This document shows positions 16,718 to 64,000 of a stretch of 64,000 bases of DNA, piece by piece (the stretch's first letter is position 1; each line of letters opens with the position of its first letter). The notes beneath the pieces are model-generated. The model was not told where the DNA came from and did not search any database. It saw only the letters and a list, made by a program, of their open reading frames with translations. Origin of the DNA: Macrostomum lignano. Its lineage: Eukaryota. Both the position numbers and the translations under genes were made by a program. The stretch is taken from positions 1 to 64,000 of the forward strand of contig NIVC01001636.1 in NCBI GenBank assembly GCA_002269645.1. Direction: 5' to 3'.

Positions 16718-17118
<401 letters not shown>

Positions 17119-17130
17119 TTGCAGAGCAAG

Positions 17131-28954: not shown

Positions 28955-29170
28955 GGTGAACTACTAGCCGTTGTGTTTTGCGAGACTGTCGCCGATACTA
29001 GTGCTGACGGAGAAGCCGGACACGCTCGATCAGCTGCAGTTTGTCGGACTCGGGACTCACGGAGAAGCTGAGGTACTCGATCAGGCCATGTGCTCAGGGT
29101 CGTTCCTGCACGCCTCCTTCAGCTTCCCAGGACCAGAAGCAGTGAGAGCGCGGAGAGAGTGCGCCCTTGT
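28955..29170 (-). pseudogene. FReD exon fragment directly joined to the WSC fragment
   Basis: Minus strand reads ALTASGPGKL..SFSVSPESDKLQL..VSGFS.STSIGDSLAKHNG**FTT, homologous to 10150-10357. A possible upstream exon at 29575-29700 ends in CAG|GTAAGT. Confidence 0.75.
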
Positions 29171-32062
29171 GCCGACACCTCTGACCAGCGTGGATACCGA
29201 TTTCTACGTTCGATATTGATTGAAATCAATGGCTGCAGAGCCGTGACGAGTTAAAGTTATGATGGGTTTCGGCCTTTTTGGCCTTCGGGCCTCAATGTCT
29301 CAGAAATAAATAAATTAGAGTACTGGCCCCTGTACTAGTACTGACTACTGGTCCTGTCAGATGGTCAGCGCCATGGTAGCTTGATCTGTGGCGAGCAGTC
29401 TAGGTCCTATAGCTAAGAGAGAGACAGCGAGAGACAAGCACGGAGAATTTCGAAGTTAAAGATCAGGCAATCCGCAGATTATTAACTAACCCACTGCCAC
29501 CAGCCCGTGCGTCATTGCTCACCAAACCGGAACTTTCGAAATCGGGCTTCCGACTAGGAGGGGCTTTGCACTTACCTGCCAGCTAGTGTCTTTGCTGTCA
29601 ATCTCGAAGTCATAGCCGATGATAAGGGACACTGCTGGGACTTGATCGCATTGGCCATGCAGGTACAGAGGGGACTTGTGCAGAGGATTCTTGCAGTGGC
29701 GAGTCTATGGGGTAGCTACGTGTACTATTACATTGCTAAATACGATTAACAGAACTTTTGGCCTTCAGCGCGCCAACTAGCCTCTCGTAGCGCTGATGAT
29801 AGACTAACTCGAACATCAGAGGCCGCATGATTCATTACCCGAGCCGCTTGGCGAATCTAGAGTGCACAGAAGTGCATCTCTAGCGCCGATTTTGCACTGT
29901 TGGCAATCTCGCTAACTGATTTGATAGGTTGATCGACTGAGAACTGCCTTGCCATTGGTCCACTGCGATCGGCGCCTACTAGCTTAGCTACTCATCTGAG
30001 CCATCGGCGAACAAAGAAATAAAACCAATAAAAAATTTCAGATTTAACCTTCTCTTTCAATCACTTCCTAATACTAAAAATGGTCTGTCTGTGTCTATCT
30101 ATCTATGTGATTTTCACACCTCAAAATGAATTGGAGTAATCAGACTACTAACAGTATTATTAAGTGATTTCTGCCTCAATAACATCACTGCTGAACAAAA
30201 TGAGCAAAATTGTGCGCCTAATCCAGCTATTGAGATAGGGGACAGATAAGGAATCACCCAATCAAGCAAGTCTAGGTAGCCTCTCACCCAACCAATCAAA
30301 AACTCAACAGCCGGAGACCAGGTATTCCACAGTGACCGAATCGGCTTAGTGCTTCGCAGCTGTAGACCCAGGATGATGCTGTCACAAACTTCGCAGGTAG
30401 CTAGCAGGTGATGACCTTAATCTTGATGATCGTTGCTGTCGACCGGGGGGATTCGTCCTTGATGATGATGGGGGGGGAGTCGCGATCCGGGGATCAAGAA
30501 ACGACGGTCGGGCTAGAGAGAGAGCGAGTTCCCGGCCAGTCAGCAGAAAGTCAGTGACAGCCGAGTTCCAAGCCAGTTGTGGTCCAAGCGGACCAAAAAC
30601 ACCGGTTTAACTGGACCGCAATTTTGTTAAAATGGAACACCTCGACGCTGATTGGCTAAGCTGATTTGTTATAACTGACGTCGAATTTTCTGATTGGCTG
30701 AGCAATTGTTGCCACTTAAACTCACGTGACAAAAGATCCTATCAGTTCCCTTGGGGCCACAAAAATTCGCCAGGTGCGGTCATAAATCACTCAAAATCGC
30801 TACATAATGATTTATGACCTTTTGCGTTGGAATTACAAAAATTAATGAAAAAATATGCATTGGAAAGGTCTTACTATGTAGAAAGTGAAGATAGTGAAGA
30901 CAAATCGCTAATCGCTAATTCCCAAAGTACTTTTAGGGGTAAAACGCATAGCTGTCAAAGCTGTTAAACGCCTGAGTGAACACGAACAATAAGCCGTGAC
31001 CTCATAAATCTGATGGCCTGTCAAAATAATGAGAAAAAAAGCTACCGCTCGCATCCTTTCAGACCATCTGGCGCCAGCCTTAACACTGAGTGAGGCGCAG
31101 GTGGCTGTCAGACCAGCTCACAAGCGATGATTTATGACCCCAAAAGTAGCAAAAACCGCGCTATGTTATTATAACTACAGGTATGGCAAATCAGATATGC
31201 TACAGAAATCCTGCTAGTATGAATTCTAGGAACATTAGAAAAAAGGAGAAAAATGCCCACGGCCTGCTGTTAGTAGGCTAGCAAGTTGGAAGCCCATGAG
31301 CGGGCGTGAAATTTGGAAAAAAAGTTCGTCCTCATCACAAGTACAAAAATGGCGTTGAATCTACTGCATCGAAGAATGTCGCCATTCTGAGACTGGTTAC
31401 TCTACAGAAGTACATTTACTGTACAAATTGCTTACGAAATATACATGACCTATGCTGGTACATGTACAGCTGCCCTTAGTATCACCAGGTCGTCGCACTT
31501 AGTAGCGCATTTACCGTTTAACTGATTTCCTACATTCTCACTTTGAGCATCAAATTTTCATAGGCGCCCGATCGTCTCGACTGTGTAATCACGGAAGGTT
31601 GGTGCGCGTGCTGTCAGGCCTTGAATTTTTCTCGTTGGCCGGCTTGTACTCCGCTGGTTCGCGTCCCGGCAGTGTCCCGATGCGGCTTGCATCCCCTGGG
31701 AGCTGAGAGAGGCCGTGTGAGGCCTGAGAGGAGCCCAGAGACAGAAAGTCGGTCAAGGGGGCGCCATGCGCCCTTACGCCGAGCTCAAGAGCTCTCAAGG
31801 GAGCCGGCCTCTCTACGCAGGTAGGCGGTGAACGACGCCCCCGCAGAGGCCGTCTCAGGTCTGCCAGCCCGCTGTCTCCCAAACCACAGCAATAAGGTTG
31901 TTGCCAACAGCTTACACACCTGCAATTTTTATCTTCATCATCTCGACTTTTCTGGAGGGGTTCGCGATCATGAGGAAAGCAGAAGAACTCAAAATTGAAC
32001 CGGAACCAGCTCGTGGCCTCATTGTACTCCTATTCATCTCATCTGGCTAGCCGCACAGCGTA

Positions 32063-32762
32063 TCAGCCAATCAGGCGGTAGTTGTGCGCGTCCACGGTCC
32101 CAGAGGCCTCGCCCCAGACCTCCACCCCCGCCACGATGCTGCCCACCCACTTGGCGGATCGGAAGTAGGACAGCGGCACGTGGGCCGTCCCTGGCGCTTG
32201 GATCAGCGCTTGGACGTCGATGCGGAACTTGCGTCACGGCGCGTGCTCCACTGGCGACCTGCGAAGGCAAGCAACGGAGTCTGGTATAGCTGATGGTTCG
32301 TCAGGTTCTTCAGGAAAAATAGAAGGTAACCAGCGGATGAAGTGCACCCAAAGGCCACCAAATCTGTGACAGTTGCTCTTCATGCTCAGTTGATGGAGCA
32401 TAGCGAGTGCATTCTGTCCAACATCAGGCAGCTTCATTCGCACCTTTTGCACGACGGAGGAATCTGTCAGAAGCCAGGACTCACCTGCACCCGGGGTCCG
32501 GGTCCTCCCAGGCGTCGTAGCGGCTGAAGCCCCACAGCTTGCCATGCAGGTTCCACACGTTGGAGCGAATTCGGGGGTTCGGGTCGATGGACTGCTCGTC
32601 GAAGGTCTTCCGGTGCCAGTAGTCTGGCAACCTGGCGCCAGGCAGAGCACTCCAGAACTCGAAGATGTTGAGCCGGATGGAGTGCCCGTACTGCTGCAGA
32701 TTGTTCCAGAAGCTGAGGTAGTGAACCACCTGACCGTGCGCGTACTTGCGATCGGGCCGGAG
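32063..32762 (-). pseudogene. 5'-truncated pseudogene paralog of the 36704-37793 secreted protein (exons 32762-32485 and 32258-32063)
   Basis: YAHGQVVHYLSFWN...NVWNLHGKLWGFSRYDAWEDPDPGCR, with the same phase-2 intron. Exon 2 has a TGG>TGA stop and a small deletion. Confidence 0.88.
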
Positions 32763-32794
32763 TAGTATGCATGAGGGGAATTCTAGCACAGATT

Positions 32795-33606
32795 CCCCCC
32801 GCAATTTTTCGTGACAAAAAACTCCCCGCAATTTTTACTTAATTGGAACTTCTTAACACCTGCTATTTATGAGGTGGATGTAGAGATCCCAACAGAACTG
32901 CACGACTATTTCTCGGACTTTCCACCCTTTCCAGAGAATATTCATTGTCCAAAAATGATGGAAAGCTCTGATGGAACTTGGTACCTGTCTAAAAGGGAAA
33001 AAAACATACCAAGAAACTCACACAAAATCTAAACAACAAAACGCGGTATAAAATTGATTATAAACTGCTGCAGTATTTTATTTACCTAAGTTGTAAGGTT
33101 ACAAAAGTGCACAGAGCACTTGCATTCACAGAAGAAACGTGGATGAAACCCTATATTGATAAGAACAACCAGTTTAGAACAGAAGCTACTAATAATTTTG
33201 ATAAGGACCTGTTCAAACTGGCCAATAATTCTGTCTACGGCAAGAGTTTAGAGAACGAACGAAAAAGAGCAAACTTGAAGCTTGTTAAGTCATCCGAGTC
33301 GGATGTTATTTTAACTAGTATATCGAAACCTACTTTTAAGGAGCTGCACCGATTTAATAATCACTTGGTTGCGATCCTATTTTATAAAACTAGAACGAAA
33401 TTAGCCAAGCCAATTTTCAAAGATGTGGCTATATTAGATGAATCAAAGCGTTTAATGTACAAGTTCTTCTATGATTTGAAGGTAAGATATGGGGATAAAA
33501 TCAAACTGCTATATACCGACACAGACAGTTTGATTTTGAGTGACAAATTGCGGGGGGTTTGTCACGAAAAATTGCGGTGAGTTTTTGTCACAAAAATTGT
33601 GGGGAG
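32795..33606 (+). mobile_element. Polinton/Maverick-type family-B DNA polymerase fragment between internally repetitive inverted repeats
   Basis: Motif B (FKLANNSVYGK) and motif C (LLYTDTDS) in ORF 33107-33580, with upstream YEVDVEIP..HDYFSDFPP. The flanks 32795-32836 and 33545-33606 are inverted arrays of a ~24-bp ccgcaatttttcgtgacaaa unit. Confidence 0.85.
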
Positions 33607-34417
33607 CAGGCAGCCTGTGTTCTCCTACCAGTTGGCGAGCGGATCCTCTGTTGTCCTGTCTGCCTCAAGATTCGACAGGTTCCTCAAGCGCTGCCTAGCA
33701 ACTGCTGAGCAGGACGCTCGTTCTTTCTCAGCGCACAGCCTGCGCAGAGGTGGTGCCACCTGGGCCTACCGTCTCGGACTATCTGTTCAAGAGGTGAAGT
33801 GCATCGGTGACTGGCGAAGTGATGCTGTGACTGCCTACCTTCCATCTGCTGATTCTGTGCGGGCTGGTTCGCGTTTTGCTGGTGCTTTTAGCGAGAGCTG
33901 CCTTTGAATAACTTTTGCTTGTGTTCAAAGTTTTATTTCCGTTCTTATCCCTAGCCTTATTTCCACCGTTTCGTAAATTCTCTCCTTCGTTCATTCATTT
34001 GTTTGTTTAGCCTTGGGGTTGCATCCTCTGGCTTTTCGCTGCCTCGCCATCGCCACACTCGGTTTGTCTTTGTCTTTGTCTTTGCCTCCCCTTCACTAAT
34101 GCACCGGTTTGCGCGAGCCCGCGAGGGCTAACCGCTGTTAGTGCAAGGGGGGGCTGTTTGGGTGCTGGCTGTCTGGTGGGGTGGTGGGTGCGTTGGTGCG
34201 TGCGCGTGCCTATTTAGGCCGCCACCTTTGTGGCTGCGCGGGGTTGCTCGCGGTTGAATTTTTTTTCCTCGCTAATTTATAATTTTTAATCAGTTTAATT
34301 CGTTTTAACAAGTCATGAAATAAATACGATCGACTGAGGGTTGCATCCTCTGGCTTTTCGCTGCCTCGCCATCGCCACACTCGGTTTGTCTTTGTCTTTG
34401 TCTTTGCCTCCCCTTCA
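33599..34417 (+). mobile_element. 3' end of a DIRS/Ngaro-type YR retrotransposon (tyrosine recombinase C-terminus plus split direct repeats)
   Basis: SAHSLRRGGAT...IGDWRSDAVTAY contains the H-x-x-R and Y catalytic region. An ~80-bp direct repeat occurs at 34016-34095 and 34338-34417. Confidence 0.85.
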
Positions 34418-34869
34418 ATAACGGAAAAAATCAAGCTCGGTCCTTGACGTGGTGTCCAGCCGAGCGAGTGTAAAGCATGTGGCCACCGATCCTCACTATC
34501 GTACATCGGCTGCGTCCTCAAACCTTAAGATCAATACCCCAGACCTTTTCCCTTGATTGCCATTTCAGGTAGCTGCAAGTCTTAGAGGACTAGGCTCTCT
34601 TAGCTCCCTATCCTTCAGTCTCCCAATCCACAAGTTCTCTGTTGCCTTGAGAGTGAAGAATTTTGACCAACCTTCCGCTATTTCCATGAGAGCTCGCTGA
34701 TGTGTGCGCAGAGAATGAAAGGAGATGGAGTAGCCCAATTCGTGGCTCTGCTTTCACTTCCCAGTATCACCTTGTCATAAAGGCCTGAAACGTACTAATC
34801 ACAGCCTTTCACCTGTTGCACCGTTAGCAACCGTTTCTAACTGGGTCATGTTTCTAATGTCGGTTCATG

Positions 34870-35235
34870 GGCACGTTTTCCCTCGCTGTCTGGAGGCAGC
34901 GCAGAGGCCGATCGCTCCGGACCGTTCTGCAGAACTGTGCGCTGCCAGACCGTCTGAAGGCCCAGCTTTTTTTGCCGCAGTGGTTGAGACGTTACTTTTG
35001 TACAACGCCAAGACGTGGATGCTCAGTGTCTCCCTGGAACGGCAGCTGGATCTGGCCCACCCAAGCCTGCTGCGAGCGGTCTTCGGAGTTCACTTCCAGC
35101 AGCGCTGACCTGTGCACGAGAGCCGGGCTGGCACCCCTGAGCCAGCTGCTTCGTGCTGGGTGCCGCCCGAGGTTGACAGGTCACGTGCCGCGTGCTGAGG
35201 CGCGGACCCCGGAGCCGCTAAAGCAGGTGCTCCGA
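34870..35235 (+). mobile_element. RTE-like LINE reverse transcriptase C-terminal fragment (frameshifted)
   Basis: LPDRLKAQL / AVVETLLLYNAKTWML..LERQLD.AHPSLLRAVFG / LSQLLR..RLTGHV, typical of RTE-clade RT tails. Confidence 0.7.
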
Positions 35236-35254
35236 CTTTATTTTTTTTTCTACA

Positions 35255-36050
35255 TCAAAATCACTCTACTGAATGTTCTCTATTCGAAAACACCGAGATC
35301 TGGCCGATTGGGCCACTAAAAAATTTCCCAGGTGCCGTAAAGTGCCTTAAAACGTCGTTTTTGAAAAATTGCATCACGTTTTTAAAAAAGTAGTCCCCAA
35401 AGTTAAGAAAGTGTTTTATGCTACGGTTTTGAGGCTTTAACACGACGTGTCAAACATATGAAAATTTGTTTTCCTGAATTTTCTAAGCATTTAGACCTAC
35501 CTGTGCAGAGCAGGGGCCCGGAAACCAGTGAAAAAAGAGGCCGGGTGCTCTGCAGAAAATCAGACGTTGTTGAGGTATTTTTTTTAAATTGGGCGAATTT
35601 TTTCAAGTGTAGTGTCAAATTGTAGCCCATCGAATGCCCGTTCGAACGACGCAAGACACTCTGGAAAAAACCCCTGTTAACATGTACTTTTTACCTGTTA
35701 ATTGAAAAACGGCCCATTTGGGGGTACAAACTTTGAAGTCGAAAAATAAGAATTTTTGCGCACCGATATTTCTGCATTTTCAATATTGTGTAGCCGAATA
35801 ACTGAGCCGAATATGGCTGGAAAATTCGTATTTTTGAGAAAATTGCCTTTGGATTTTTAGGATGTTTTTAGGCAAATTTTGAGCATACTTTTGCTAATTA
35901 CTCTGCATTGGCAAGGCCTAGAGACTCAAGTTTGGTGTCTAAAAACAGCACTACGGATGCACTATGCAACTAAATCAGTTTTGAATACTGATTATTCTTA
36001 GGTTAAAAGGTCTTAATACCTGTTTGATTACCTGTCGGAACAGGTGAAAA
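35255..36050 (+). mobile_element. Non-coding interspersed repeat (copy 2 of 24790-25590)
   Basis: Colinear similarity with 24790-25590. Confidence 0.8.
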
Positions 36051-36057
36051 TGTATTA

Positions 36058-36210
36058 CGCAACCCCTACCCAACAACAACAACAACCCTAACAACAACCC
36101 CTACCCAACAACAACAACAACCCCAACAACAACAACCCCTACTCAACAACAACCCCTACTCAACAATAACAACAACCCCAACAACAACAACACTCCCAAC
36201 AACAACCCAC
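36058..36210. repeat. (CAA)n / caacccctacc compound microsatellite
   Basis: Directly visible. It lies ~350 bp upstream of Helitron-like end copy 2. Confidence 0.9.
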
Positions 36211-36559
36211 GTTTGAGTTTTACGTCCTATAAATACTCTAGTGGTACTTGATTGGATAGCCTGCTGCACGAGACTACAGTTTCGTCGAGACTGAATTGTG
36301 CACCATTTAGTTTGGATATTTGGCGTAAGGTATTTAGGGTTTGGAAATATTGGTCACTAAGATGTTTTTTAGCAGTAAATATATGCCTGCAATTTATATC
36401 CGTTTGATAAGTAATTTTATTAATTTATTTAAACAGTTATGCATAAACTTTGTTTAAATGAAATTATAATCATAGCCCAAGCAGCTTTTAAGTTCTTAAT
36501 TTGTAAAATGTAATAGCCATTTAAGATAAAAACACAATATAGCTTCTTAATTAGTTCTT

Positions 36560-36656
36560 AATTTGGGTTAAATAAATAGGTCATAACCATAAACAATATT
36601 GGCCATAATAAACCATCGTCCCACCTTTGAAGACGACAGTGTCTTCATTCACTAGT
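36560..36656 (+). mobile_element. Helitron/Helentron-like 3' terminus (copy 2)
   Basis: Near-identical to 28030-28131 (hairpin plus CTAGT). Confidence 0.6.
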
Positions 36657-36703
36657 TTATTTACCACGTAACCCGAAAAGCTACAATTAAGGTGCAACGG
36701 CAA

Positions 36704-37793
36704 TCAGCCAATCAGACGGTAGTTGCGCGCGTCCACGGTTACTGAGGCCTGGCCCCACACCTCCACGCCGGTCACGATGCTGCCCACCCACTTGGCCGAC
36801 CGGAAGTAGGACAGCGGCACGTGGCCGTCCCTGGCCAGGCCGTGAATCAGTGACTGGACGTTGATGTGGAACTTGCGCCACGGCACGTTCTCAATCGGCG
36901 ACCTACAAATACGATGGACAAGATGGAGCATAGAGAAAAGCGCCCGCGATTGAGCGAATTGTTGCGTTCAGTGATTGCTGCGATCGATTTAAACCCAACG
37001 GGGTGAGTGTGAGAGCTTTGGCGACTCACCTACACCCGGGGTCCGGGTCCTCCCAGGCGTCGTAGCGGCTGAAGCCCCACAGCTTGCCATGCAGGTTCCA
37101 CACGTTCGCTCGTAGGTTGGGATGCGGGTCGATCGACTGCTCGTCGAATGTCTTGAGGTTCCAATAGAATGGAGGCTTGGCACCACGCGGGGCACTCCAG
37201 AACTGGAAGATGTTGAGCCGGATTGCGTGCTCGTACCGCTCCTGATCGTTGTAGAAGGTGAGGTAGTGCGACACGTGGCCGTGCGCGTACCTGCGGTCGC
37301 CCCTGTAGCACACCTTGGCACGCAGCTCCAGCTCCAGGTAGCGAATCTTGAAGGGGTCGATTCGCAGGGGCGGCAGACCAGAGCACACGGTGTTTTGATT
37401 CTCCTGGATGCCGATGTACGACCGAGTTTGCACGCTCCAGTCGCGCATGCTCAGCGTCAGTCTCGCGAAGCCCTGGTTGGACCAGTAGAAGTAGAAGGGG
37501 CACCGCTCGCCTAGGATCGGCCGGAACACCGGCTTCGGGTCGTTGATGATGGCCCCGGTGTTCGGCTTGCACGGCGTGTCTCGGTTTGACTCGGCGTCGT
37601 ACGACAGCGTGTAGAAGCCCCTGTTGAGGCTGTTGCAACACCTTCCAGTGCTAGAGGCGGCACAGCTTTCAAAGAAGTAGGGACTATTGGGGTTCCAGTA
37701 GGCCGCCAGCTGTTTGCGCATGCCCGGGTCCCAGTTCAGGTTTGCGAGCGCCCCAGGCAGGAGGCAGAGGAGCAGAATAGCGAAAGACTGCAT
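36704..37793 (-). CDS. Secreted 320-aa protein of uncertain family, possibly a GH12-like beta-jelly-roll (exons 37793-37030 and 36902-36704)
   Basis: Signal peptide MQSFAILLLCLLPGALA. Phase-2 intron (AG|GTGAGT ... TTTGTAG|G). Trp/Tyr-rich and GC-rich. The C-terminus HINVQSLIHGLARDGHV...WVGSIVTGVEVWG resembles the GH12 acid/base strand. Gene model confidence is high; family assignment confidence is low. Confidence 0.8.
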
Positions 37794-39084
37794 GGCTACC
37801 AATTCCCCATGCAGTCGTGAAGGTTTTGCGGCTACTTAAAAGCAAGAACTTCTCGCAGCTGACAGGTTCCCTGCGTATCGCTGACGGATAAGGCAAGTCA
37901 GACAAGGCAAGTCAGATAAGGCTAGTCTGATTGAGCCAAAGTCTTGTGACAAGGTCCCGTAAATAACTGATTTGGGTGTAATAGAATAAGGAGCTCGTAT
38001 TACTTGTTTAAAAAAATTTCAAAGGGTCAAGTTGAACTTCGGTGGTTTTAAGCCAGATCAATGTCTTAGGATTATTGTGTAATTTTAGTTTAGTTTTTAG
38101 CAATTTTTGGATGGTCCAAACTAGCACGATTATCATAAATAATTGAATACTACATTGACCTCTCTTTGTGTATCTGATGAACTAAAAATTTATGAAATAA
38201 CCATCAGCATAGTTCTTGAGCCTGTCTGAACAAAATCAATGAATCCACGGAAACTAGAAAATCCATACAGGTAGAGGTAAAAAGAAGGCAAAGACAAATA
38301 AGCATGAAAATTAAGACTTAAAAATAAACATAGGTTCAAAATAAATATTAAAAAACTTTGAGTGCAACCATGAGGAATCGGTCTATTGTCTATTTAATCT
38401 ATTTAAGGACATGGGCATACGATTTAAGATATTTTATAAACCCTTGTGCAAACCTGCTATGATTGATTGATGTTGTCTTTGGCCTCCTCACTCTATGCTT
38501 GAGGTTGAGGTCTCGTAAAGTAGTTCTACCTATGCACATGTACCGACGTATGATATTCTCGCACGATATATTTGCAAGATATACACCCAACTCGACCCGC
38601 ATGGCTCTACCGAGACACTACTTGACCCGCACGGCTACACCGAGATCTTAGATCACCCATCTACTGTCTATTTGCGATCCGTCGTTATCTGTGGCGATCT
38701 GCGGCGATCTGCGGCGGTCTCAGGCTATCTGCAGCGACCTACGACGATTTCTAGCAATCTGCGGTTAGCTGAGGCGATATGAAATCTGCAAGTGGCCCAA
38801 AGGCGATCTACATCGGCCGGAGCGAACTGAACATCGGCTGAGACGCGGTCTGCATCCGCCAAAGGCCACCTACGACTTTCCGAGCGAGGAGACGAACCAA
38901 GGCCGCAATTACGTTTCGTAAACCGGTATTCGTAGTCCGTCTTAGCAGTTGGTTTGCGTGATTTTAGTTTTAGGTCCTTTAGGTTGGGTATCAGGTCCTG
39001 CCAGATACTGTGTGCTTTTGTTCTTCTCTCATTTTCCGCTTTCTATTTCTTTCTTGCTGCCTTCTCTTCCTTGCCGAGCCGGTC

Positions 39085-41530
39085 ATGAGTGATCACGAGG
39101 AGTCCGCAGTCAATAGTGCCACAGGCACAGGGAGTGCTGCAGGTTTTGGTACCTCTGATTCTGAACAGAAGCCCAATGCGAGCGCTGCAAGCGCAAGTTA
39201 CACATCAGATCCGCTGCTCGCCAACACTTTTACTGCGTTGCACCGCTTCCTAGAAAGTCGATTTTCGGGAGAACCGCCGACTAGAACTCGCTATGAGAAT
39301 ATCGAATTATCATCAAGCATCAAACTTTGTCCGCCTGCACTGTTCACTATTAATACTCCCTTTGATGTCTGGAAAGCCCAGTTTAAAACCTACATTGAGA
39401 CTACCAATGTCCCTTATTTTCAACAGACTGCTGTGCTCCAATCAATTCTGGCAACCAAATGCCAAGACTTCTTTCTGAACAACAAATTAGATAACAAATC
39501 TTGTGATGAGGCGCTACGCCTCATGAGAGCACGGTACACAGACTCGAATCTCAAGGATAAAAAGTACATGGAGCTGGTTTCGACCCATCAAGAAAGCGCT
39601 AAGTCCATTGTAGAATTCTATGACCGTCTGGCCACCTGTGCCAGGATCGCTTGCTTGACTTCAGAGGTGTTGGCTGAAAGGCTCCTGTGCTGGAGTAGGA
39701 ATACAGTGGAAAGGAGTTCCTTGTTGAACGGTAAGACCAAGAGTGTTTCGGCTGCTGTACTAGTTTCCAAAGCCAAAGAGATGGTCGGTATACAGCAGCT
39801 TCTGCACCCCGCTCCGAACTCTTCTGCGAATATCCGAGTCCTTGAGACCGAGAAGGCTTCTCTGGAGGCAAGAGTAGAAGAGCTAGAGAGACTCCTTCGA
39901 CTCCAGAACCAGGCTGGTGTTTCCAAGCCTGTTGCTGTCAATCGACCACAACTATCTAACAAGCCAATCCAAAATTCAAACCAACACAAGCCACATAACA
40001 ATCACAAGAATAAACAGCCGCCAAATCATGGGGCAACTCAGCAATTTGGTACAGCGGTGTCCGATTGCTAGTCCGATTGCTAAATAGTAGCGATCAACCA
40101 GCTAGGATTGAGCGTGACCAAGAGATTGCATCTTTCAAGAGCTCGGCCATGGAGAAGTAGTACATGTAGTACCAACTGCTCTGTCTGAGAAGTATTTTTC
40201 CATAGACAACTGCAATCTCCTCAACAGTAAGCTTTCAAGATTACCACCACCAGAAAAAGGTACAGCAGAATGGCTTGTGAAACAGTTCCTACTCGACCAG
40301 TCCAGTCTGACTCCAAATCAATGAGACCTAACTTTGCGCATGCTTAACTACTTTTTAAGCCAGATATCCCAGGATAATAGTGATCTTGGTCGCACAAAGC
40401 TACATGAAATGTCAATCGATTTGATTGAGAAGGACAATCATCCGGTTCTGCTCGCTTCGAGGAGCTAGAACAACTCCAGCTCAAAAGGAGTTTTTAGATC
40501 AACATATTAGTCAATTGCTCAAGCAGGATGTAATTGAAGAGTGTGATTCAGACTGGGTATCACCGATAGTGTTAGTTAAGAAGAAAGATAGGTCTCAGAG
40601 ACTATGTATTGACTACCGAACTGTAAACAAGTTAATTCGACCCTGTAGTTTTCCATTGCCAATAATTGAGGAGTCGTTTGACAGCCTGGCTGGTTCTTCG
40701 GTGTTCAGCAGCCTTGACTTAACCTCTGCCTATTGGCAGGTGGGAATCAAAGAAGTAGACAGAGATTTTACAGCTTTCTCTTGTCCACAGGGCGCGTTTC
40801 GTTGGAAGGTAATATCATTTGGGATCAAAACAGCCCAGCGAATTTCGGTAAATTAATGCACAAGGTATTCCAGCCATTGCTTATGAAAGTTAGCCTAATT
40901 CACCTTAATGACATAAAAATAAAAGCACAGAATAATGACCAAATGATCGCGCACTTAGCGCTGGTGCTTTGGCAACTTCGCACTTCGCACTTCAGGCCAA
41001 CCTGAAGATTAAACCTGCGAAGTGTGAGCTATCCAAAGACAGAGTTATGTTCTTAGGGTTCATAGTCTCGTCTAATGGTATCGAAGCCGACCCAGCCAAG
41101 AATCGAGCAGTCCAAGAGTGGTGTAGACCGAAAGACAAGAAACAGTTTATGGCGTTTCTTGGCTTTCCCAACTATTATAGGAAATTTGTACAACGATTCT
41201 CAGTTATTGCCACGCCGCTGTACGCGCTGGCGAAAGGTGGTTAGAACGCCACGAACGCGCGTTCCAAGAACTCAAGCGCAGTTTGTGCAACCCACCGGTA
41301 TTAGCGTATCCGGACTTGTCTCCCGACATTCGTGGGTTCGTTCTCGACTGCGACAGTTCACTTGAAGGAGTTGGCGGCGTGCTATCTCAGATAGGCCCAG
41401 ATGGGTCAGAACAAGTCGTTGCGTACGCATCTAAGAAATTTTTGCAGAGTCAGTCAAATTATTGTGCAACCATGCGCGAGTTACTAGGGTTAGTACTCAT
41501 GCTAGAGCACTTTTGTACAAATCTGTGAGG
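39085..41530 (+). mobile_element. Decayed Ty3/Gypsy internal region (gag plus frameshifted RT/RNase H)
   Basis: Gag-like ORF from ATG 39085. RT motifs WVSPIVLVKKKD, LCIDYRTVN, SSLDLTSAYWQV. RNase H motifs FVLDCDSS, VAYASK. Many frameshifts and no LTR recognised. Confidence 0.88.
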
Positions 41531-41635
41531 GTACCGGCCAGGGAAAGACTATGTCGCGGCAGATATGCTGAGACAAAATCCTCGCTTTCGAGCCGATCAC
41601 TTCGACTGCCCGTCGTGCAGCATTGTACCTGAATT

Positions 41636-42350
41636 TCAAGAGAAATTTAAAATCGAGCAAGCTAAAAAGTCAGCATCAGTTAAAATCAGAAAGCAGCAAG
41701 TTGACGCTGCAGTACAATGCTCTGTAGCGTTAGTGACATATACACATAGTGTACTATGACACATAGTGCTTTTGACACTAGGAGGCGGTCCTACCGAAAC
41801 CAGCATGATGTTGAAGGAGCTATCGGTTTGGAATGTAACGAATCTAGGTGGCTTCGCCTCGGCCTCAAATTTTTTTATTAGTTGCTCCAATGAGTTGACA
41901 GAATCCTTAAGAAAAAAATCTGCTATTAACTGCTCTTGAACAGCAAAACCGGCCTCGTGTCGACGCGATGACGTAGCTTTGTCAGATCTCTCAGTTCGTG
42001 GAGGCTTTGTAAAGTAGGGCGGCATATTTGTGCTGCTGAATTGTGTGGGAACTGCATCTGGCTTCAGTCTTCTCCGGGAGAGGAGAGCATGGAGATCATC
42101 AGTAGACTTTCGCTTCTTCCTGCGCAGGTGGCTGTCTTGGCTGTCGCTGACAAAATCCGAATCGACGAAGTGCATAGAGCAGATGCGAGTGTAATTAGTT
42201 GGTTCGAACGTTGGCTCTCTAGATAGGTTACGAGCCATTTTGCAAGGAGTTCCTTGTTTTCAGGAAACCCTCATGAAATGACACTTCTTTCCCTGTTACC
42301 TGGGAGTCGTATCCGGATTTGCAGCCATATACAGCACACTTGTAGGGCAT
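41636..42350 (-). pseudogene. THAP zinc-finger ORF remnant (P-element/THAP transposase-like)
   Basis: From ATG 42350 it reads MPYKCAVYGC...SFH, frameshift, FPENKELLAKW, frameshift, RNLSR...RICSMHF...LKPDAVPTQF: the full C2CH THAP signature. Confidence 0.82.
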
Positions 42351-43591
42351 TCGGACAAATACGAATATTTTACTTTAGCAGAACGAGTCAAGAATAAGGA
42401 ATCAAGAAATTAAAGCAGGGAACTTTGAAATCACGAAAATATGTGCACAAAGACAGCTTTAAACTCAATTACGATGACTAACTTAAAATTCAACGTACAT
42501 TTGTACCCCTATGTTGTTGTATCATGAAAGATAATGTACAATAATGTTTGATTCTTCATACGTCCCTATATTCTCTCTCCTCTCTTCCCCATTTTTTACT
42601 TGCTTATACCCTTCAGCCTGCGAAACGAGCCCGAGCAGGCCTGGTCCGTTGTCTGTATTGGTCTGTGCATGCCTGCCCCCGGTCCCACGCGGACTACCAT
42701 TTTTCTTTATCATCGCGCCAGCTTACAGTGTCCGGGGTCCGAGCGCCTCCACTCAAAAGTTGGTATTCCAGCTGCTAGATCTAGATTTCCTTGGTTCAGA
42801 GAGGTGGAGAACAAGGGACGCAGAAAAAAAGCTTCTCCTACTGCCGGCTGTTCTTTTTCCAGCGAGGAAGAATCAACTCAGACAAAGAGCCCGCTATGTT
42901 GGACCATAAAACTATAGATATCAAGTATAGGTATTATAGCTAGGTTAATATCTAGAATTATATGGTTGGAGCCGCTAGCTAAAGAAGCTATTTTGGTTTG
43001 GAAATTTCCCGTTTTCATATTGTTGCGTTTTCTTCGATACAAAAGATAAGATAGTTCGCCTGGCGGATCGGATATTTTCATTTCAAGAGTTTATACATGT
43101 AAGGAAAGAGAAGAGCTAGAAATTGCATGCAAAGGAAGAGACGAAGAAGACAGGAAAATATACTGAGAAATTAGAGACTTAAAAGCGAAAGGCTGAAGGC
43201 CGAAAGGATTAAGAAAATGAAAAGAGGGTGAGATAGAAATGCGCAAAGAGAAAGATGGATCAATTTGCCGCGCAGAAGAGGTACAGTGCAAGAGAGTAAG
43301 AGGTGGGAGTGGTGGAGAGGGAGAAAAGATTGGGTGAAAGAATGACAATTGAAAGTGATTAGAGTTCCTACTCATTCAAAAATGCAATTTTGCTCAGTTG
43401 AAATGGCTAAAAATTCAAATAAAAAAGTAGCTATTTAAAAAAATTGTGAATCCACCAACTTGCCTTAGCCGAGTTAGCAAGGGATGATCCAAGGGCGCAT
43501 TTATGGGATGCAAAAAGCGCTTGCCTCGTTCCTTGCATCCCGAATGCCCAAGTAAGTTTGGCAGGGGGACACAGACTTGACAAGCACTCAC

Positions 43592-44047
43592 TAAGATATT
43601 CCAACGAGTACACAGAGTTCGTGAAGTATCCGCCGCACTTCGGCGAGTGAGTGCCGGTACATGATTTATCACAGCTGGTCTCGGACATATTTTTAAACTT
43701 TCTGTAGGTATTTCCGCAGAAGCACTCCATGCCGTACTGCAGACCCATGTAGGGGAAGCCGCCAGCTGAGCAGATGCCTCCAAACCTGTAGTGCACTTGT
43801 GTGTGGCAAAAAAACTGGTCTCGTGGACCGTATATTTGGGCTATTATATAGACTCACTGCCGACGTGCGGCTACAGTGTTACGCAATATTTTGCGGGGCC
43901 AGTGCTAGCGCACGTTGGACAAGAGGGCAAAGCTATAGTCAGAGAAAAGCGTGAAGGCATAGAGGGGGCGTACACTACAACACCGCTCCGGAGTCATGCC
44001 GCCAGTCGAAGCGCGCGCACCGGACGAACCAACAAAGTGATGGCCTG
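43592..44047 (-). pseudogene. WSC exon fragment split by a solo LTR
   Basis: PGHHFVGSSGARASTGGMTPERC, then the insertion, then GGICSAGGFPYMGLQYGMECFCGN...NSVYSLEYL with donor A|GTGAGT at 43591. The 5' end is replaced by a FReD fragment, and no PAN exon was found downstream. Confidence 0.88.
43787..43979. mobile_element. Solo LTR (193 bp)
   Basis: Termini TGTAGTGCAC ... GTACACTACA (TG...CA, 10-bp inverted). Near-perfect 5-bp TSD AAACC/ACACC. Internal TATA-like sequence. Confidence 0.75.
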
Positions 44048-44400
44048 GCATAATTTCGGCGGGTCCTATTCGCATGAGTTCGAGATGCTGCTTCTGCAAC
44101 AGCACCAGCATGATGGCATAAAAGATGTGGCTGCTAAAAAAAGGCAAAATCAAGCGTTGAATCGGCTTTGAAGCGACTTTGACATTTGCTAAAATTCATC
44201 CAAACTCAAGTATTTTTCTGAAAACAGAATTTATCAGCTCAAGCGCTCGATACGAGCGGAATGAAAATACACTGATAGTTCACTATTTCGACCGATAATA
44301 AGATTTCATTTCGATGTGCTTTCAAATCAGTTTTCGTCAAACTGGGTCTCCTCACCATGGACAGGTAAAATTAAAATTTGAGATTTGAGACTACACTCTC
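44048..44400 (+). pseudogene. FReD 3' end plus flank fragment
   Basis: HNFGGSYSHEFEMLLL followed by the conserved FReD 3' flank (cagcaccagcatgatggcat...gactttgacatt). Confidence 0.7.
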
Positions 44401-44741
44401 AAATCTCAGTTTTTCTGCACAATGCTGCATTAATATTATTGTGCAGGTGACTCAACTAAACTTATTCCTGGAAAGAGTCGTTTCTCTGCATAGCGGTAAA
44501 CGGTTTCGCCGAAGGCGTTAGGTCAGGTGGCCACAAACCACTTTTTTAAAAAGCAGAGAAGAATACGAGCTAAAAAGGAATACTGACTGTAATTTTAAGC
44601 ACAATTTTTTCGACCTGTAGTGCGACCAGTTTCGACCTGGGAGGTCGACAATTTTTTCGACCACTGACGATAGGTAGCTAACCTCCGACATAAAGGTATT
44701 GTTCGCTATTTAAAAACACTACTCATGTAGTATTCGCTACC

Positions 44742-45260
44742 CATGTTCACCACGAAGGTCACCGGTGGAAACTGCGCAAGGATGAAAAAAGGAGCCTTCT
44801 AGTTCAACAACCCTTTCTACACCACCCGAACGGAGAGTACAAAGACGCATCTAATGTCATTGGAGGTGCTGCAGTTGGAATTTTTTGGTACCACTACTTT
44901 GGCCTTTCGCACTCGCTGAAGGAATTCGAGATGCTGGTTCTGTAACAAAACCAGCGTGATGGCATGGAAGATGCCGCTGCTGCAACAGGCAAAATCGAGC
45001 GTTCAATCAGCTTAAAACAACTTTGACATTCCCGAAAATTTATCCAAACTGAAATATTTTGCTGCAGAGCAAAGACAGTCGTTAGATAAAGTGCCGGATA
45101 CTAATAAAAAAAAAACACGACTTCAAAATTTGGACCGATTTTAGGATTTACAATTTTTTAAATGCCCTCAAATCAGTCCCCGTCAATGCCTACTAATGTT
45201 GGGTCTCGCCATGGACTCACCATGGACAGCTGAAGTACAAGGACTCTACAATCTCAACCT
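44742..45260 (+). pseudogene. FReD last-exon pseudogene plus 3' flank
   Basis: FTTKVTGGNCARMKKGAF*FNN, frameshift, HPNGEYKDASNVIGG..GIFWYHYFGLSHSLKEFEMLVL*, then a flank homologous to 10790-11065. Confidence 0.85.
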
Positions 45261-45433
45261 CGCAAATTTACTGAGTCTAGTTCTCTGGAAATTACTGAAT
45301 TGATATAATTATGCATCTGACCTTTCTAATCTGAATCAAGAGTCGCTATTCAGCATTGCAGTAAAGGTTTCCTTCCTAGGATACAATGCAAACTTGCAAG
45401 CTTCGTTGCCATTTCCTAGGAACTTTCCTAGTA

Positions 45434-45660
45434 ACTAGTGAATGAACACTTCGCAGTCTTCAAAGGTGGGACGATTGGTTATTTGCTGTTTGTGTTTATG
45501 TATTTAGCCTGTATTAAAAACCAGCTAACAATAACAAACACAAGAACAACATAAACAGCAACTAAAGGAACAACAAGCAACAAAAACACCTAACAGTAAA
45601 GAAACAATGCATAAAAAACAGACAAACTAACGAATAAACCACTACTGTTGGGTAAGGGAG
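45434..45660 (-). mobile_element. Helitron/Helentron-like element end (copy 3) with AAC-rich interior
   Basis: The reverse complement reads atcgtcccacctttgaagactgcgaagtgttcattcactagtt. Confidence 0.55.
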
Positions 45661-46585
45661 GTCGAATGTGAGGGGTCACACCCCCAAATTCACCCTCACC
45701 TCACACCCCGAATTCCCTTGACTTTGCCCTCCCGTAACCTCTACACAGATCCTTTGTAGTATGTTGAGGCTACCAGACGCAACATCCTGGCCTATATGTA
45801 TCGAAAAATGTTTCTTGTTCAGTAGCTATAATTGTGAGAAGTGAGAAGTGGCAGTTCGACAAGTAGCAAGGTTCTAGTCCAGCCGCAGACCACTTGTGAG
45901 CAATATATACAGTGACCGAAGAAACAGCCCTAACTATCGCTCGCCAGCTGCGTGCCTTTACATCACCTAACCCTGATCTAATCGATCTATTTAATCTGGG
46001 TCCTGTGTCAGCTCAGCGGTAACTTGTCCGACTTTCACGGAATAATCTGGTCCAATTTCGTCCGTGGCCACATTAATTTGTGGCTTTTGTAGGAAAATTG
46101 CATGTCCGGGATTGTGGTGCTATTCAAACTCATGAGGACTAACTCTTAAGGCACAGAGAGTGTACATGCCTGATGATTAGAAAGTCAGGGCCGCTGTTAC
46201 ACCCTGTGTGAGCGTGTGTATGATGCGTAACTGCGTACAGCATTGGCACAGTAAGCAGAATGGCTAGAATTGTGGGACGATTTCGCCGAAGGAGTTAGAG
46301 CAGGTGCCCACAAGCCTCCTGAAATTTTTTATCGGTATTCTAACCTGAGCTTTTTAAAAGGAATAATGTCTGCAAATTTAGGGACATTTTATCGACCACT
46401 GACGATAGGTAGCTAACCCTCGACATGACGGTATAGTCCGCTCTTTAAAAATATTACAACGAAAGCATTTCTTCAGACTTACTTTAAGTAGAATGGAGCG
46501 GATAAAACTCGCTGCTTTGTCTATAAAACCGCGCGTAATTTACCTGATATTCCTAGAATTCACCCGAACTCTGACGAAAGGTCTG

Positions 46586-47446
46586 ATGAATTTATCCGGA
46601 ATCCTGCTAAACTTTTGGTACCTCTGCCAGCTAAGTCTGATAGCGGCAGAGGCCAGGCTGTTTCGCACGAACTACATTGGCTGCTTTGAGGATTCTGGCG
46701 AGAATCGCCACCTCACAGGAATGAAGGACATTCTGACTTTTCCAGGCCATCAATTTGTTGGTTCGTCCGGTGCTCGCGCTTTGACTGGCGGCATGACTCA
46801 GGAGCGATGTGGTGGCATCTGCTCAGATGGCGGCTTCCCCTACATGGGACTGCAATACGGCATGGAGTGCTTCTGTGGAAATACCTACGGAAAGTTTAAA
46901 AATATGTCCGAAACCAGCTGCGATAAACCATGTACCGGAAATGACTCGCCAAAGTGCGGCGGATACTTCACGAACTCTGTGTACTCGTTGGAATATCTTA
47001 GTGAGTGCTTGCCACGTCTGTGTAAGGGATTTGCGGGCTTGTGGGAAATACGAAGAAAAAGCATGGTAGATACCTTATGCTTCTTCAAGATTTCAAGATG
47101 TGAAGTACAAAAATTTTGAACGGTAACATCAGTTTTATCACGTCAATGACGGGAGAAAAATGAATCACTTCTTGCTAAACCTAGTGCACTTCGGAAAATA
47201 CTTTGCACTCAAATTTCAGACCCGAATAACCTGTTCGTCCGAGGCACGAAAAGTAACTTTTCCGCCAGTATTCCAATGCACCGGACTGTGAGCGCCAGCG
47301 GACTGAAGGAGTGCGTCTACCTGTGCGAGACCGACTGCCAGAGCGTGCTTTTCGATGAAGAAAATCGCAATTGCCACCTTCTGAAGTTTGCCATGCTGCC
47401 GACAAGCCTGTCTAGCGTTACAGGAGAGTTCCTCTGCCGAGCTTGA
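46586..47446 (+). CDS. Secreted signal peptide + WSC + PAN/apple-like protein (exons 46586-47000 and 47220-47446; 213 aa)
   Basis: ATG 46586 with a hydrophobic leader and a complete WSC domain. Phase-1 intron (A|GTGAGT ... TTTCAG|AC). Exon 2 reads ECVYLCETDCQSVLF...CHLLKF and is missed by the ORF track. Confidence 0.88.
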
Positions 47447-50030
47447 CAGTTTATTCACCTGAAGCTTTGAAAACTCGAGACTTTATAAAGTCTAATTGAG
47501 AAACTAAACAGTGTTTTAACTATTTAAAAGAGCTACAAGAACTAAAATATTAAGAACTGAATGACTGAAAATGATAGACTTTAATAAATGCATCTACAAG
47601 TTTGTCACAAACAGAAATTCGTGTGCCATCAAGTTCGTAGAGTACTAGAGATTTCAGTTTAAATTGACTGAATATTCCATCTTATTGTCTCTAAATATAC
47701 TTTTACTCTTTAGAGACCATTAGGGGTTAGGTGAGTGACGAAGACCGAACGCAGAACGTGGGCACAAAGCAGTGAGCAGGGGAGCAACCCCTGGCTGTTC
47801 GACGAGTTATTTATTTGAAAGGCTGTTCGATGAGCTACGAGCGTAATATTTGAAATTGGTATTTAAGACACTAAGAATCAAAGAATGCACTACTTCGTAT
47901 TTAAAAAAAAATTATGCAGGTGTGCGACACCACGAGCAGAGCACAAGTTGGGGGTTGAAAAGCTAGCCACCCCGCGACAACCCCCCAACGCAGACGCCAC
48001 TCCGCCACCCCTAACACACTTTGTAAACGGCCTACTGCCGCCCACAAAGCACACTTAGGGGTTAGGCGAGTGACGAAGAGCGAACGCAGAACGTGGGCAC
48101 AAAGCAGCGAGCAGGGGAGCAACCCAAAACTCCAAAAAGCAGGCGAGTCAGAGGGGAGAGGAGGCAAATGATGAACAGTAGGAGCCAAGGCAAGCAGACA
48201 TAGATCGACGGGCCACTAGGTTAACGGCACTGCCATCAGAGATGTACCGCGAAACCGCCGAGCTGCGCCAATCTCCCAGCAGTTTGATGCGGTCCACGCT
48301 CAGCCCAGCATTGAAAGCAAACGTCGCTCCACCACGCCGGAGTGAGTGCGCCGAGAAGCTAGAAGCTTCCAGTCCGGCCTTGCAAAACAGGCGATGCAGG
48401 CGGTGGCGAACCCCCCGCTGAGTCAGAGGCCGCCAGGATCGCAGCGCTGATGAAACTGAGAATATGGGCAGACTGTGAGACGCATCAAAAACGCGATTCA
48501 GCTGCCAGTGATGTCAAAGCGCAGCCACAGGACACAACTTAAGAGCAGCTGCTGAGCTCTGGCCCATGACCGGGAGCTGGATGGTGTGAACGCGCTCACC
48601 GAACTGCACTGTCTTTGAACGGGCTACAAAGATGGTAACACCAGCGCGGCTGAACTTGACGTCAGATATCCTGATCGCGCTCGCTCGCCGATTGAGACGA
48701 AGCATGCCGAACCAGCCCGTGAGCACGAGAGCCCATAGAGCAGCATCTACCGGATCTGACAGCAGCAGGTGCTGCCGAATGCGCATCAGATGCTCCGGCC
48801 GGAGTGGTTGCTTAGTGGCTGGGTTCCACGACTTGCTTAGGTCCCGTCTGATTCCTTTTAGGATGAGTGGCAGAATTGGAGCTCGCGCGACTTCGTCAAG
48901 ACCGAGGCAGCAGCAATACCAGCTCAACGCTTGCACATGAAGTTGAACACTGTTGAACGAAAGTAGGCGAAGAGAGATGTCGGACAGGTAGAGAACGAGA
49001 AGCTCCACCGTGGGCTGCTCAGGTCGTTAATTTAGCCCTTGACAGAAACGACATCAGGCTCGCCAGACAGACTCGTAGGTCAGCCGTGTCGACTCCGCCA
49101 GAGACAACTCGATCAGACAAGCCGCCCGCCCCCGAAGCCGCCGCACCGCAGGGTCAGGACCTGTAAAAGCAGAAAATGGGAGGGAGCAGAGGCCAGCGCG
49201 TTGGAGGCAAATTCAAGCGGGCACACTAGCATAGTGCCATAAAAACGCATGCAAAAGTTAATGAGGCCACTCCGAGAATGAAGACGCGAAATAGGGTCAG
49301 CATAGGTTTGAAACCAGCCTGGCACATGAAAGAAGCTTTGCACAACTTTGTTTGCGAAACAGAAGAGACCAATGGTCTGAACAGTCAGATCAATCTTATC
49401 AGCGGGCAGGCAAAGCAAACCAGAGCTCGTGTCGATGTTCACACCGAGGTAGGTGACGATCTGGGCTGGGGCGCTGCTCTTCTCCCAGTTGATGTCGAAC
49501 CCGAGACGTTGGAGAAGGCCAGTTAAAAACTCATAGGCCTCTTCACACTTGGCTTTACTGTCAAAGGCAAGGCCAAAGTCATCCAAATATCCAACGACAT
49601 TGCTAAAGCCAGACCGCTGCATAATTCGGACAATCGCCTGCGAGATTCTGTGAAAAATAGACACAGAGGCAGCTGCGCCAAACATCAGCCGGGTGTCAAC
49701 CAGGTAGCACGGCGAGTCGGCTCCTTTGAATTTCCATTGCAGACCGGCTGCCGGGTAGCAAGAAGGGTGAATGCCAACGGAGCGGTAGGCATGCTTGATG
49801 TCGACTTTTGCCACAAAGCAGCCAGGACGGAGCAGACGATAAAATTCATCGATAGACTGAAAGCGGATGCGTTCCTGCTGATGGTAGTGACTGTTGATAG
49901 AATTTCCATACGGAGCGCTGGCGTCGTGAATCAGCCGGATTGATGAGCTGCCTTTAGGGATTGCTGCCAGCGGGCTGACCTTCGTAGGCTTTGTGGAAGA
50001 CTGTTCTTAGCTCTATTTTAGTTTGCTTAT

Positions 50031-56489: not shown

Positions 56490-57480
56490 TCCTCAACTGT
56501 AACCACAACGAGGAAATATCTAAAATCAACGAAACTCTTCCTTAGCATATGCACACAGCATCTTTCTGTTGACTGTGTCACTATTGACTCAGCATTAATG
56601 TCGTTCATTTGTGGATATCGTAATCAAACAGGAATGAAACCGTGAGTGCTGAAGCGTGAGGAATCATTAAAACTCGCAATTGCGAGGCATCCTTCTACTT
56701 TCTGCTTTTACATTTGCGTGTTCTGCTAACAATCGAAAATCTAAGAAAGCATTTCTAGACAAACCTCTCAAGACCTCCTACCGCACGAAATGCCAATTAA
56801 AACGTGGCTCTCGAGACTTCGTCATTACGTTTGCTGAAATGGCAAACAGGCACTAAACATTTCTCTTTTATATTTCTATTTCAGAAAATTCATGTATGAC
56901 AAGTTTTTACTTTTTTGATAGAAAAGATTTGATTTTTTCTTTGGCACTTCGCGTATACAATGAAATAATGATAGATGTGGATGGTTTTGGTGTATCTTAT
57001 ATTTTAAATATTATCTAGATCAAGGCTGGCAAGCTCACCGCTGCGGACCACATGGAAGAGCAAATGGAGAGGGAATGAGATAGGGAAAAGAAGAAAGAGA
57101 AGATGACAGAAGAGAGGAGAGGTGAGAGATTCGATAAGAGAATAGAGGAGAGAGGAGAAGGGAGTAGAAATGAAAGAAGAGTTGAAAGCAGAGAAGAAAG
57201 AAGAGTGTCGGAGAGACTTGGGGACTTGGTGACTTGCGTAGAGACTTGAGCGGGCCGATGTCTCCTGACGGCAGAAAATTGGAAAGCTTCCACTCAGCTG
57301 TTCTAGGCAAGCTAGGACTCCTAAAAGTTACCGTTGAATCAGGACGTAGCGCATGTGTAAATATTGATCCCAATGTCTTGAAGACTCACTTTTTTACGTA
57401 AACTTTGCGATGTTTGTCTTCATCACTCCATCACGCAGCTGCATTGTTTTCGACTGCACGATATATCGCCTATACCTCGT
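56490..57480 (+). repeat. Second copy of the 11375-12670 non-coding block
   Basis: Colinear shared segments as listed for 11375-12670. Confidence 0.85.
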
Positions 57481-58279: not shown

Positions 58280-58359
58280 ACTCGTTCACACCTTCATCAG
58301 ATGAGTCCAATTGTTCGTAGCATTATTTCATTGTTTAACTCATTTCGGTGTGAACGAGT
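58280..58359. mobile_element. 80-bp MITE-like element
   Basis: Perfect 13-bp terminal inverted repeats ACTCGTTCACACC / GGTGTGAACGAGT. Confidence 0.55.
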
Positions 58360-58581
58360 CTTTGAGGTTTTACACTTCTGCATGAGTACATACACAAGTA
58401 CATTAAAATCAAGAAAAGAAAAATATTCAAATTTAGCTTGATGATGACCTTTCTCTTAAAAACAGCAAATAATATCAATAAGTTTGCTTTCAGAAAAAAA
58501 GTCTGGTTTGAATTTTTCAATTCAAACTGTTCAGCAGTTCAGGCAGTCGACTGCCTATAGGTTACGACATCCGCCTTTGGT

Positions 58582-59693: not shown

Positions 59694-59727
59694 ACTCCCA
59701 TGTGATGGAAAATAATAAAATAGTTAA

Positions 59728-63968: not shown

Positions 63969-64000
63969 GTTAATAACCTGACTGGTGTGATGACCAATCA

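Follow-up and report, generated by a model that had tools for sequence, protein, structure and literature searches.

Clan GH-C of the glycoside hydrolases comprises families GH11 and GH12, in both of which the general acid/base is a glutamate on the penultimate strand (B4), and in GH11 a conserved tyrosine on the strand beside the nucleophile contacts that nucleophile. An animal genome carrying a gene with the GH12 fold is not unprecedented, since GH12 genes proper, acquired by horizontal transfer, are described from the dorylaimid nematodes Xiphinema index and Longidorus elongatus in the account given in PMC5664137. The gene from the flatworm Macrostomum lignano that we present here resembles those cases, as that report presents them, in being a microbial-type gene for a secreted protein of glycanase fold with a patchy distribution; however, the nematode genes are reported there as GH12 members, whereas the flatworm gene falls in a distinct family that has no name, and it lacks the canonical catalytic pair. 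What is new here is this family and its pattern of conserved residues.

The gene lies in a 64,000-nucleotide stretch of M. lignano contig NIVC01001636.1 (the window), where it occupies 36704..37793 of the minus strand as two exons with an intact reading frame. Exon 1 (37793..37030, minus strand, beginning with the ATG at 37793..37791) codes for residues 1-254 and two nucleotides of codon 255, and exon 2 (36902..36704) for residues 255-320 and the TGA; between them lies a 127-nt spliceosomal GT-AG intron (37029..36903, GTGAGT...TTTGTAG) in phase 2, with TGT AG before and G after the junction. On the same strand, about 43 nt past the stop, an AATAAA polyadenylation signal can be read from the sequence at 36661..36656. 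The spliced coding sequence of 963 nt yields a product of 320 aa that matches the annotated M. lignano hypothetical protein BOX15_Mlig032870g3 (P0001) over its full length with 318/320 identities, indicating that an independent annotation arrived at the same splice. By the criterion of hydrophobicity, the N-terminal residues 1-17 (MQSFAILLLCLLPGALA, followed by N; 37793..37743 in exon 1) form a typical signal peptide, with a mean Kyte-Doolittle value of 2.35 over residues 3-17. Gene model, annotated match and N-terminal hydrophobicity hence agree with the intron-containing, secreted-protein gene that the first-pass annotation had described here. The conserved cysteines at positions 44, 52, 75, 98, 162 and 254 are all encoded in exon 1. 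Literature searches with the gene identifier and for Macrostomum glycoside hydrolases recovered no expression, localisation or activity data for this gene.

An exhaustive HMMER search of 1.84 billion protein cluster representatives at E <= 1e-3 recovered a family of 59 representatives, whose full-length homologs (~300 aa) show 25-35% identity with a best E of 4e-32, a similarity far above chance; shorter matches of 40-58% identity are exons on long eukaryotic contigs. A word-index homolog search returned the flatworm protein alone and its profile version three proteins, and a scan of genome contigs with a one-peptide pattern found four loci. The family is made up of sequences from DPANN archaea, CPR bacteria, Planktothrix, GC-rich marine protists and a few animal contigs. 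The named prokaryotic members come from Candidatus Pacearchaeota, Woesearchaeota, Candidatus Paceibacterota, Planktothrix agardhii and P. rubescens, with one further member on a contig binned as Saccharibacteria. The flatworm protein matches no Pfam family at E <= 10, and PDB sequence searches, conducted both with the single protein and with a profile, gave chance matches only. Members are uniformly annotated as hypothetical apart from one “peptidoglycan-binding protein” and one “endo-1,4-beta-xylanase”, names that derive from fused domains: among 39 members we found fusions to PG_binding_1 in three, to GH10 in one and to a GH100-like fragment in one. The archaeal and CPR gene neighborhoods consist of housekeeping genes (TruD, SRP54/FtsY) and offer no functional hint. 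Many bacterial members additionally carry one or two copies of a small C-terminal module of the form G-K-F-R...Y-Y-S-N-G-x-x-A-x-C-x-Y or G-Y-Y...Y-F-x-N-G-x-N-A-F-C-W-F (P0006, P0015, P0021, P0022, P0026, P0029, P0030, P0037 and P0044; also P0019, P0033, P0036, P0039 and P0058), which matches nothing in Pfam; it could be a novel binding domain that accompanies the family.

We then examined the predicted fold. The AlphaFold2 model of the flatworm protein, built with a 44-sequence alignment (pLDDT 92.4, pTM 0.90), consists largely of beta structure and ends in a helix (270-279) and, after it, two long strands; DSSP assigns strands at 170-182, 187-200, 291-305 and 307-319. Foldseek comparison with the PDB gave 102 matches at E <= 1e-3 (probability 1.0, best E 1e-6), the best 50 of which are all GH12 endoglucanases or xyloglucanases, followed by GH11 xylanases or GH11-derived constructs. 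Among the matches listed, the TM-score is modest, at 0.26-0.39 normalized by query and 0.33-0.47 by target (0.23 for a receptor-xylanase fusion entry), at an rmsd of 7-12 A and 7-14% identity. A second, independent model of the divergent bacterial member P0048 (pLDDT 87.9) gave 126 matches at E <= 1e-3, the best 50 again GH12, GH11 or GH11-derived, with T. maritima Cel12A on top (E = 5e-8, probability 1.0) and a target-normalized TM-score of up to 0.56 to GH11. Foldseek comparison with viral structures produced no match at E <= 1e-3. The models thus show, as the predicted structure of the flatworm protein, the curved beta-jelly-roll of clan GH-C, and the GH12-like fold that had been guessed by eye holds at the level of the clan. 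The topology that guess had described, namely a helix, then the G-x-E-x-W-G strand and a final strand, is likewise present, and the motifs quoted for it, FHINVQSLIHGLARDGHV, KWVGSIVTGVEVWG, VDARNYRL and YEHAIRLN, are all found, falling respectively on helix 270-279 and on strands 291-305, 307-319 and 187-200.

GH12, as represented by T. maritima Cel12A (PDB 3AMH/3AMM) and T. reesei Cel12A (1H8V), is the best structural match of both models, and the family shares with it secretion, a beta-jelly-roll whose single helix packs ahead of the penultimate strand, and on that strand a glutamate within a G-x-E-x-aromatic-(x)-G pattern (G-x-E-x-W-G in the family, G-T-E-P-F-T-G in fungal GH12). However, the flatworm protein exceeds GH12 by ~80 residues, its N-terminal third being elaborated and rich in disulfides, the TM-scores reach only 0.3-0.5, and the family conserves neither the E-[LI]-M-I-W nucleophile motif nor an equivalent of the conserved aspartate. 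Sequence homology to GH12 is also not detectable. None of 44 family members matches PF01670 or the GH11 Pfam model at E <= 10. Profile-profile alignment with hhalign against 29 GH12 sequences (T. reesei Cel12A, 1H8V, and its fungal relatives; the profile is fungal only because the relatives search returned no bacterial sequences) gave probabilities of 0.04-0.44% in local, permissive and global runs, never reaching significance. Judged by sequence the protein is not a GH12 enzyme, and the membership suggested by the first-pass annotation, together with the profile comparison it proposed, fails at this level. The non-significant alignments are topologically coherent: helix is placed against helix and the family's h-i-n-G-x-x-w-G against VNVGGQSW of Cel12A, and every run that reaches the C-terminus, though equally non-significant, pairs G-x-E302-x-W-G with G-T-E200-P-F-T-G of Cel12A. 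GH11 xylanases (e.g. Bacillus circulans xylanase) form the second group of structural matches, the highest target TM-score (0.56) being that of the bacterial member. The family would resemble them in the pairing of its invariant Tyr177 with residue 192, although residue 192 is not glutamate in the flatworm or in most members, and the flatworm protein is much larger than the ~190-aa GH11 domain.

Conservation across the family (flatworm numbering) extends to D22, P23, G24, E42, C44, C52, G59, F60, Y61, C75, N78, C98, P99, F102, W104, Y126, G128, Q130, N132, G139, R158, C162, Y177, G240, D249, C254, W263, G281, G300, E302, W304 and G305. The glutamate of the G-x-E-x-W-G strand, which had been read by eye as the acid/base strand, is conserved: E302 (codon 36763..36761, minus strand, in exon 2) is present in 23/24 aligned full-length members and kept in the divergent subfamily as GPE or GIE. 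It is the sole acid on the C-terminal strands and lies on the penultimate one (291-305), after helix 270-279. The partner position is of a different nature. On the strength of topology and hairpin arithmetic, from which the strand register and the cleft placement of conserved residues are taken, Tyr177 (codon 37265..37263, minus strand, in exon 1) would pair with residue 192 (Arg in the flatworm, codon 37220..37218, likewise in exon 1) on the polar face of the hairpin formed by strands 170-182 and 187-200 across a four-residue turn. The two positions covary: Tyr is combined with Ser or Ala in most members of the main prokaryotic family and with Arg in all animal copies, and Gly with an invariant Glu ([VL]-E-[ILM]-N) in the divergent bacterial subfamily alone, which also holds the GH10 xylanase fusion and 2/3 of the PG_binding_1 fusions. 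This pattern resembles, by analogy, the Tyr/Glu-nucleophile neighborhood of GH11 and suggests that a canonical pair exists only in the divergent bacterial subfamily. An alternative register from hhalign, itself non-significant, sets N194 against D99 and E218 against the nucleophile E116 of Cel12A and would give the flatworm protein a second glutamate in E218. At position 218, however, only ~65% of members have an acidic residue (E/D), and L006, the closest animal copy, has Gln; position 194 is Asn in the animal copies and Asp in about half of the prokaryotes. As judged from the alignment, there is no family-invariant second carboxylate under either register.

Taking these observations together, we propose, with a probability of about 0.65, that the gene belongs to an uncharacterized family, lacking a Pfam model, a solved structure or a functional name, which has a clan GH-C-like fold, retains E302, lacks the classical nucleophile, functions as a non-canonical glycan enzyme or a glycan binder and is derived from microbes; as part of the same proposal, the flatworm product is a secreted, disulfide-bonded, single-domain protein with a mature form of ~303 aa. 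It is probably carbohydrate-active. The residues D22, E42, N78, W104, Y126, Q130, N132, R158, Y177, D249, W263, E302 and W304 would line a substrate cleft on adjacent strands of the concave sheet, and such a lining of invariant polar and aromatic residues suggests that the protein binds a glycan chain and probably cleaves it. The classical Glu/Glu double-displacement pair of GH12 would not be used; the protein may instead catalyze by a non-canonical route, using a single acid, another base or a lyase-like set of Tyr, Arg and Gln, or it may be a derivative that only binds. A more specific version, which we put forward tentatively, is that it represents the first animal member of an unrecognized CAZyme family of clan GH-C fold, in which Glu302 works together with a Tyr177-centered site in place of the classical Glu nucleophile, that acts on a microbial polymer and was taken from microbes for digestion or antibacterial defence. 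Such an enzyme might be a single-acid transglycosylase or act by a substrate-assisted or lyase-type mechanism, with peptidoglycan or an algal exopolysaccharide as examples of its possible substrate.

The binding-only option can be stated as an explanation in its own right: a non-catalytic, lectin-like derivative or pseudo-enzyme of a GH-C-type ancestor, serving for instance in mucus, in the gut or in pathogen recognition. The concanavalin-like jelly-roll commonly serves as a lectin scaffold, and all animal copies have Arg rather than a carboxylate at 192; at 194 they have Asn instead of the Asp seen in about half of the prokaryotes. We nevertheless regard this explanation as doubtful. E302, D22, E42, D249, R158, Q130 and N132 are nearly invariant from archaea to animals at ~25% identity, which fits a conserved chemical step better than binding alone; moreover, the prokaryotes of the main family also lack Glu192, so that Arg192 does not represent a recent loss from an intact pair.

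With respect to origin, the distribution of the family is patchy, with M. lignano and a few animal contigs on one side and archaea, bacteria and protists making up the remainder, and the exhaustive search of the 1.84 billion representatives recovered no other named animal with a member. Within the flatworm the gene is physically integrated in the host genome, as is evident from its intron and polyadenylation signal, from the host genes and transposons around it, and from the recurrence of the locus on a second contig. That contig (L008, NIVC01000896.1) carries the BOX15_Mlig032870g3 gene and is collinear with 28955..64000 of the window at 97-99% identity; the two gene copies, both of them intact, differ at 8 nt, which alter 5 codons synonymously and 2 non-synonymously. 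The intron, the transposon flanks, the collinear locus and the lack of another named animal thus corroborate the earlier view of a genuine animal gene in a mostly microbial, patchily distributed family. The paralog that had been cited against contamination is real, but it is a truncated pseudogene (32063..32786, minus strand; 69-73% aa identity), since it covers residues 155-320 only, starts abruptly and has a TGA (32236..32234) in place of the Trp263 codon of the intact gene. It has an intron of ~220 nt at the same position as that of the intact gene, its 5' end abuts a PolB-like transposon fragment at 33107..33580, and it is present at the collinear locus as well. The ORF at 33107..33580 (plus strand) contains a family-B DNA polymerase-like motif (YTDTDSLIL) and sits exactly where the paralog ceases to resemble the intact gene, as if the duplicate had been cut short by an element bearing PolB, Polinton/Maverick-like or otherwise.

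The other animal copies are found on three contigs. On L006 there is a six-exon copy, which is more closely related to the flatworm gene than any other, and both L001 and L007 have two multi-exon copies in divergent orientation, with fragments of UDP-glucuronosyltransferase and GGACT genes as neighbors on both and an HTH_animal ORF on L007. The animal copies have up to five introns, and all those outside the flatworm contain the flatworm intron at the identical codon and in phase 2, the conservation having been checked on L001 and L006. Rfam models matched nothing on the animal contigs. The head-to-head pairs span 6973..12368 of L001 and 5768..13946 of L007; one L001 copy has lost the conserved Cys254 and has an altered splice donor (TCT AA before GT, as against TGC AG before GT), and one L007 copy has an in-frame stop. 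Among the protist members, the copy on L009 adjoins kinesin and sulfatase genes, and those on L010 and L011 are multi-exonic; the proximity of the L009 member (157..3239) to the sulfatase gene could reflect a link to the metabolism of sulfated polysaccharides or be a coincidence. In a neighbor-joining tree, computed without support values, the animal copies are monophyletic with the flatworm gene and the protist copy lies outside; the animal clade is not nested in a particular prokaryotic clade, and no donor clade is resolved.

Given that no other named animal has the family, we consider it most likely that the gene entered animals by transfer from microbes, and the patchy distribution combined with integration in the host genome favors transfer into an animal ancestor. 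In such a scenario the gene would have passed from a microbe into an ancestor common to M. lignano and the few other animals, gained introns, of which one is common to all animal copies, and then been duplicated, leaving M. lignano with one intact copy per haplotype or homeolog and the truncated pseudogene. An ancient eukaryotic or pan-domain family that was inherited vertically and lost in almost all animals would accommodate the presence of members in at least one protist group, the monophyly of the animal copies outside any prokaryotic clade in the neighbor-joining tree and their up to five introns. We hold vertical inheritance to be unlikely, however, as among the 1.84 billion representatives the animal side comes down to one named animal and to contigs of the ENA analyses ERZ25069580, ERZ25070167 and ERZ25072384, whose accession numbers are adjacent, the protist copy falls apart from the animal ones in the tree, and losses would be required in nearly every sequenced animal lineage, including the other sequenced flatworms.

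Still less probable is a canonical retaining endo-beta-1,4-glucanase or xyloglucanase of the GH12 type in which Glu188 would be the nucleophile and Glu302 the acid/base. In its favor, the best fold matches are GH12 structures, and the strand that bears the conserved E302 is the right one. E188, in the YEHAIRLN segment, occurs in 5/7 animal copies; its long strand may be counted as B6, and the residue is on the face toward the cleft. Yet no prokaryotic or subfamily member conserves E188, and it is replaced by Pro in the closest relative, L006, and by Gly in the pseudogene. It is situated at the first turn of its strand, four residues before position 192, where the subfamily has its invariant Glu and the flatworm Arg192. 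The PF01670 search found nothing and no profile match was significant. The earlier proposal of Glu188 as the nucleophile is not sustained.

That a microbial gene was mis-assembled into the flatworm scaffold can be set aside as effectively refuted: the GC3 of the gene is unusually high relative to neighboring genes, but its spliceosomal intron is at a position common to the other animal copies, it has a polyadenylation signal and is flanked by retrotransposons and host genes, the same arrangement including the pseudogene recurs at 97-99% identity on an independent contig, and the prokaryotic homologs are AT-rich. The first-pass annotation had likewise thought contamination unlikely, and the intron, the host flanks and the second contig agree with it, the paralog it had counted in addition being the pseudogene.

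The high coding GC noted there is confirmed by measurement, at 61.5% against 36-40% in the 1-kb flanks, but it fails as an argument for acquisition, as the nearest archaeal and CPR homolog genes are at 38-41% GC. GC3 is 0.84, and six other ORFs of the window have a coding GC of 47-57% and a GC3 of 0.53-0.64. We also considered high GC3 as a trace of the donor and rejected it: genes of the donor type are rich in AT, and GC3 in the homologs of the other animals is 0.46-0.55, so that the anomaly in the flatworm gene is real but not a donor signature.

If the protein is active, it would define, within the structural clan of GH11 and GH12, a new family of glycanases whose catalytic residues are non-standard and which spans DPANN archaea, CPR bacteria, cyanobacteria, marine protists and a few animals, and a flatworm would join the few animals with acquired microbial carbohydrate-active genes; if inactive, it would be an example of an enzyme fold turned binding protein. 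As M. lignano is amenable to RNAi and in situ hybridisation, the biological role of the gene is directly testable.

Several other features of the window were observed alongside. About 17 kb (~38000..55385) is missing from the collinear second locus; the block is transposon-rich and looks like a haplotype- or homeolog-specific insertion. It includes retroelement gag/RT ORFs (39010..40856), an RT together with a possible tyrosine-recombinase ORF (48514..49814, minus strand) and an intact ORF for a 1260-aa gag-pol polyprotein (50235..54017) with RT and integrase motifs recognizable by eye. Three Cys-rich ORFs at 6974..7420 (plus strand), 43431..43796 (minus strand) and 46493..47119 (plus strand) have in common a motif of the GGFPYMGLQYGMECFCGN type that is WSC domain-like by eye, and may constitute a local family of secreted carbohydrate-binding proteins. 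At 863..2652 and 3267..5917 (plus strand) are tandem multi-exon genes, clearly similar to each other and MFS/SLC22-type transporter-like by eye, and a long (CAGA)n-type microsatellite at ~16700..17130 reads as DRQT/SVCL repeats in several frames.
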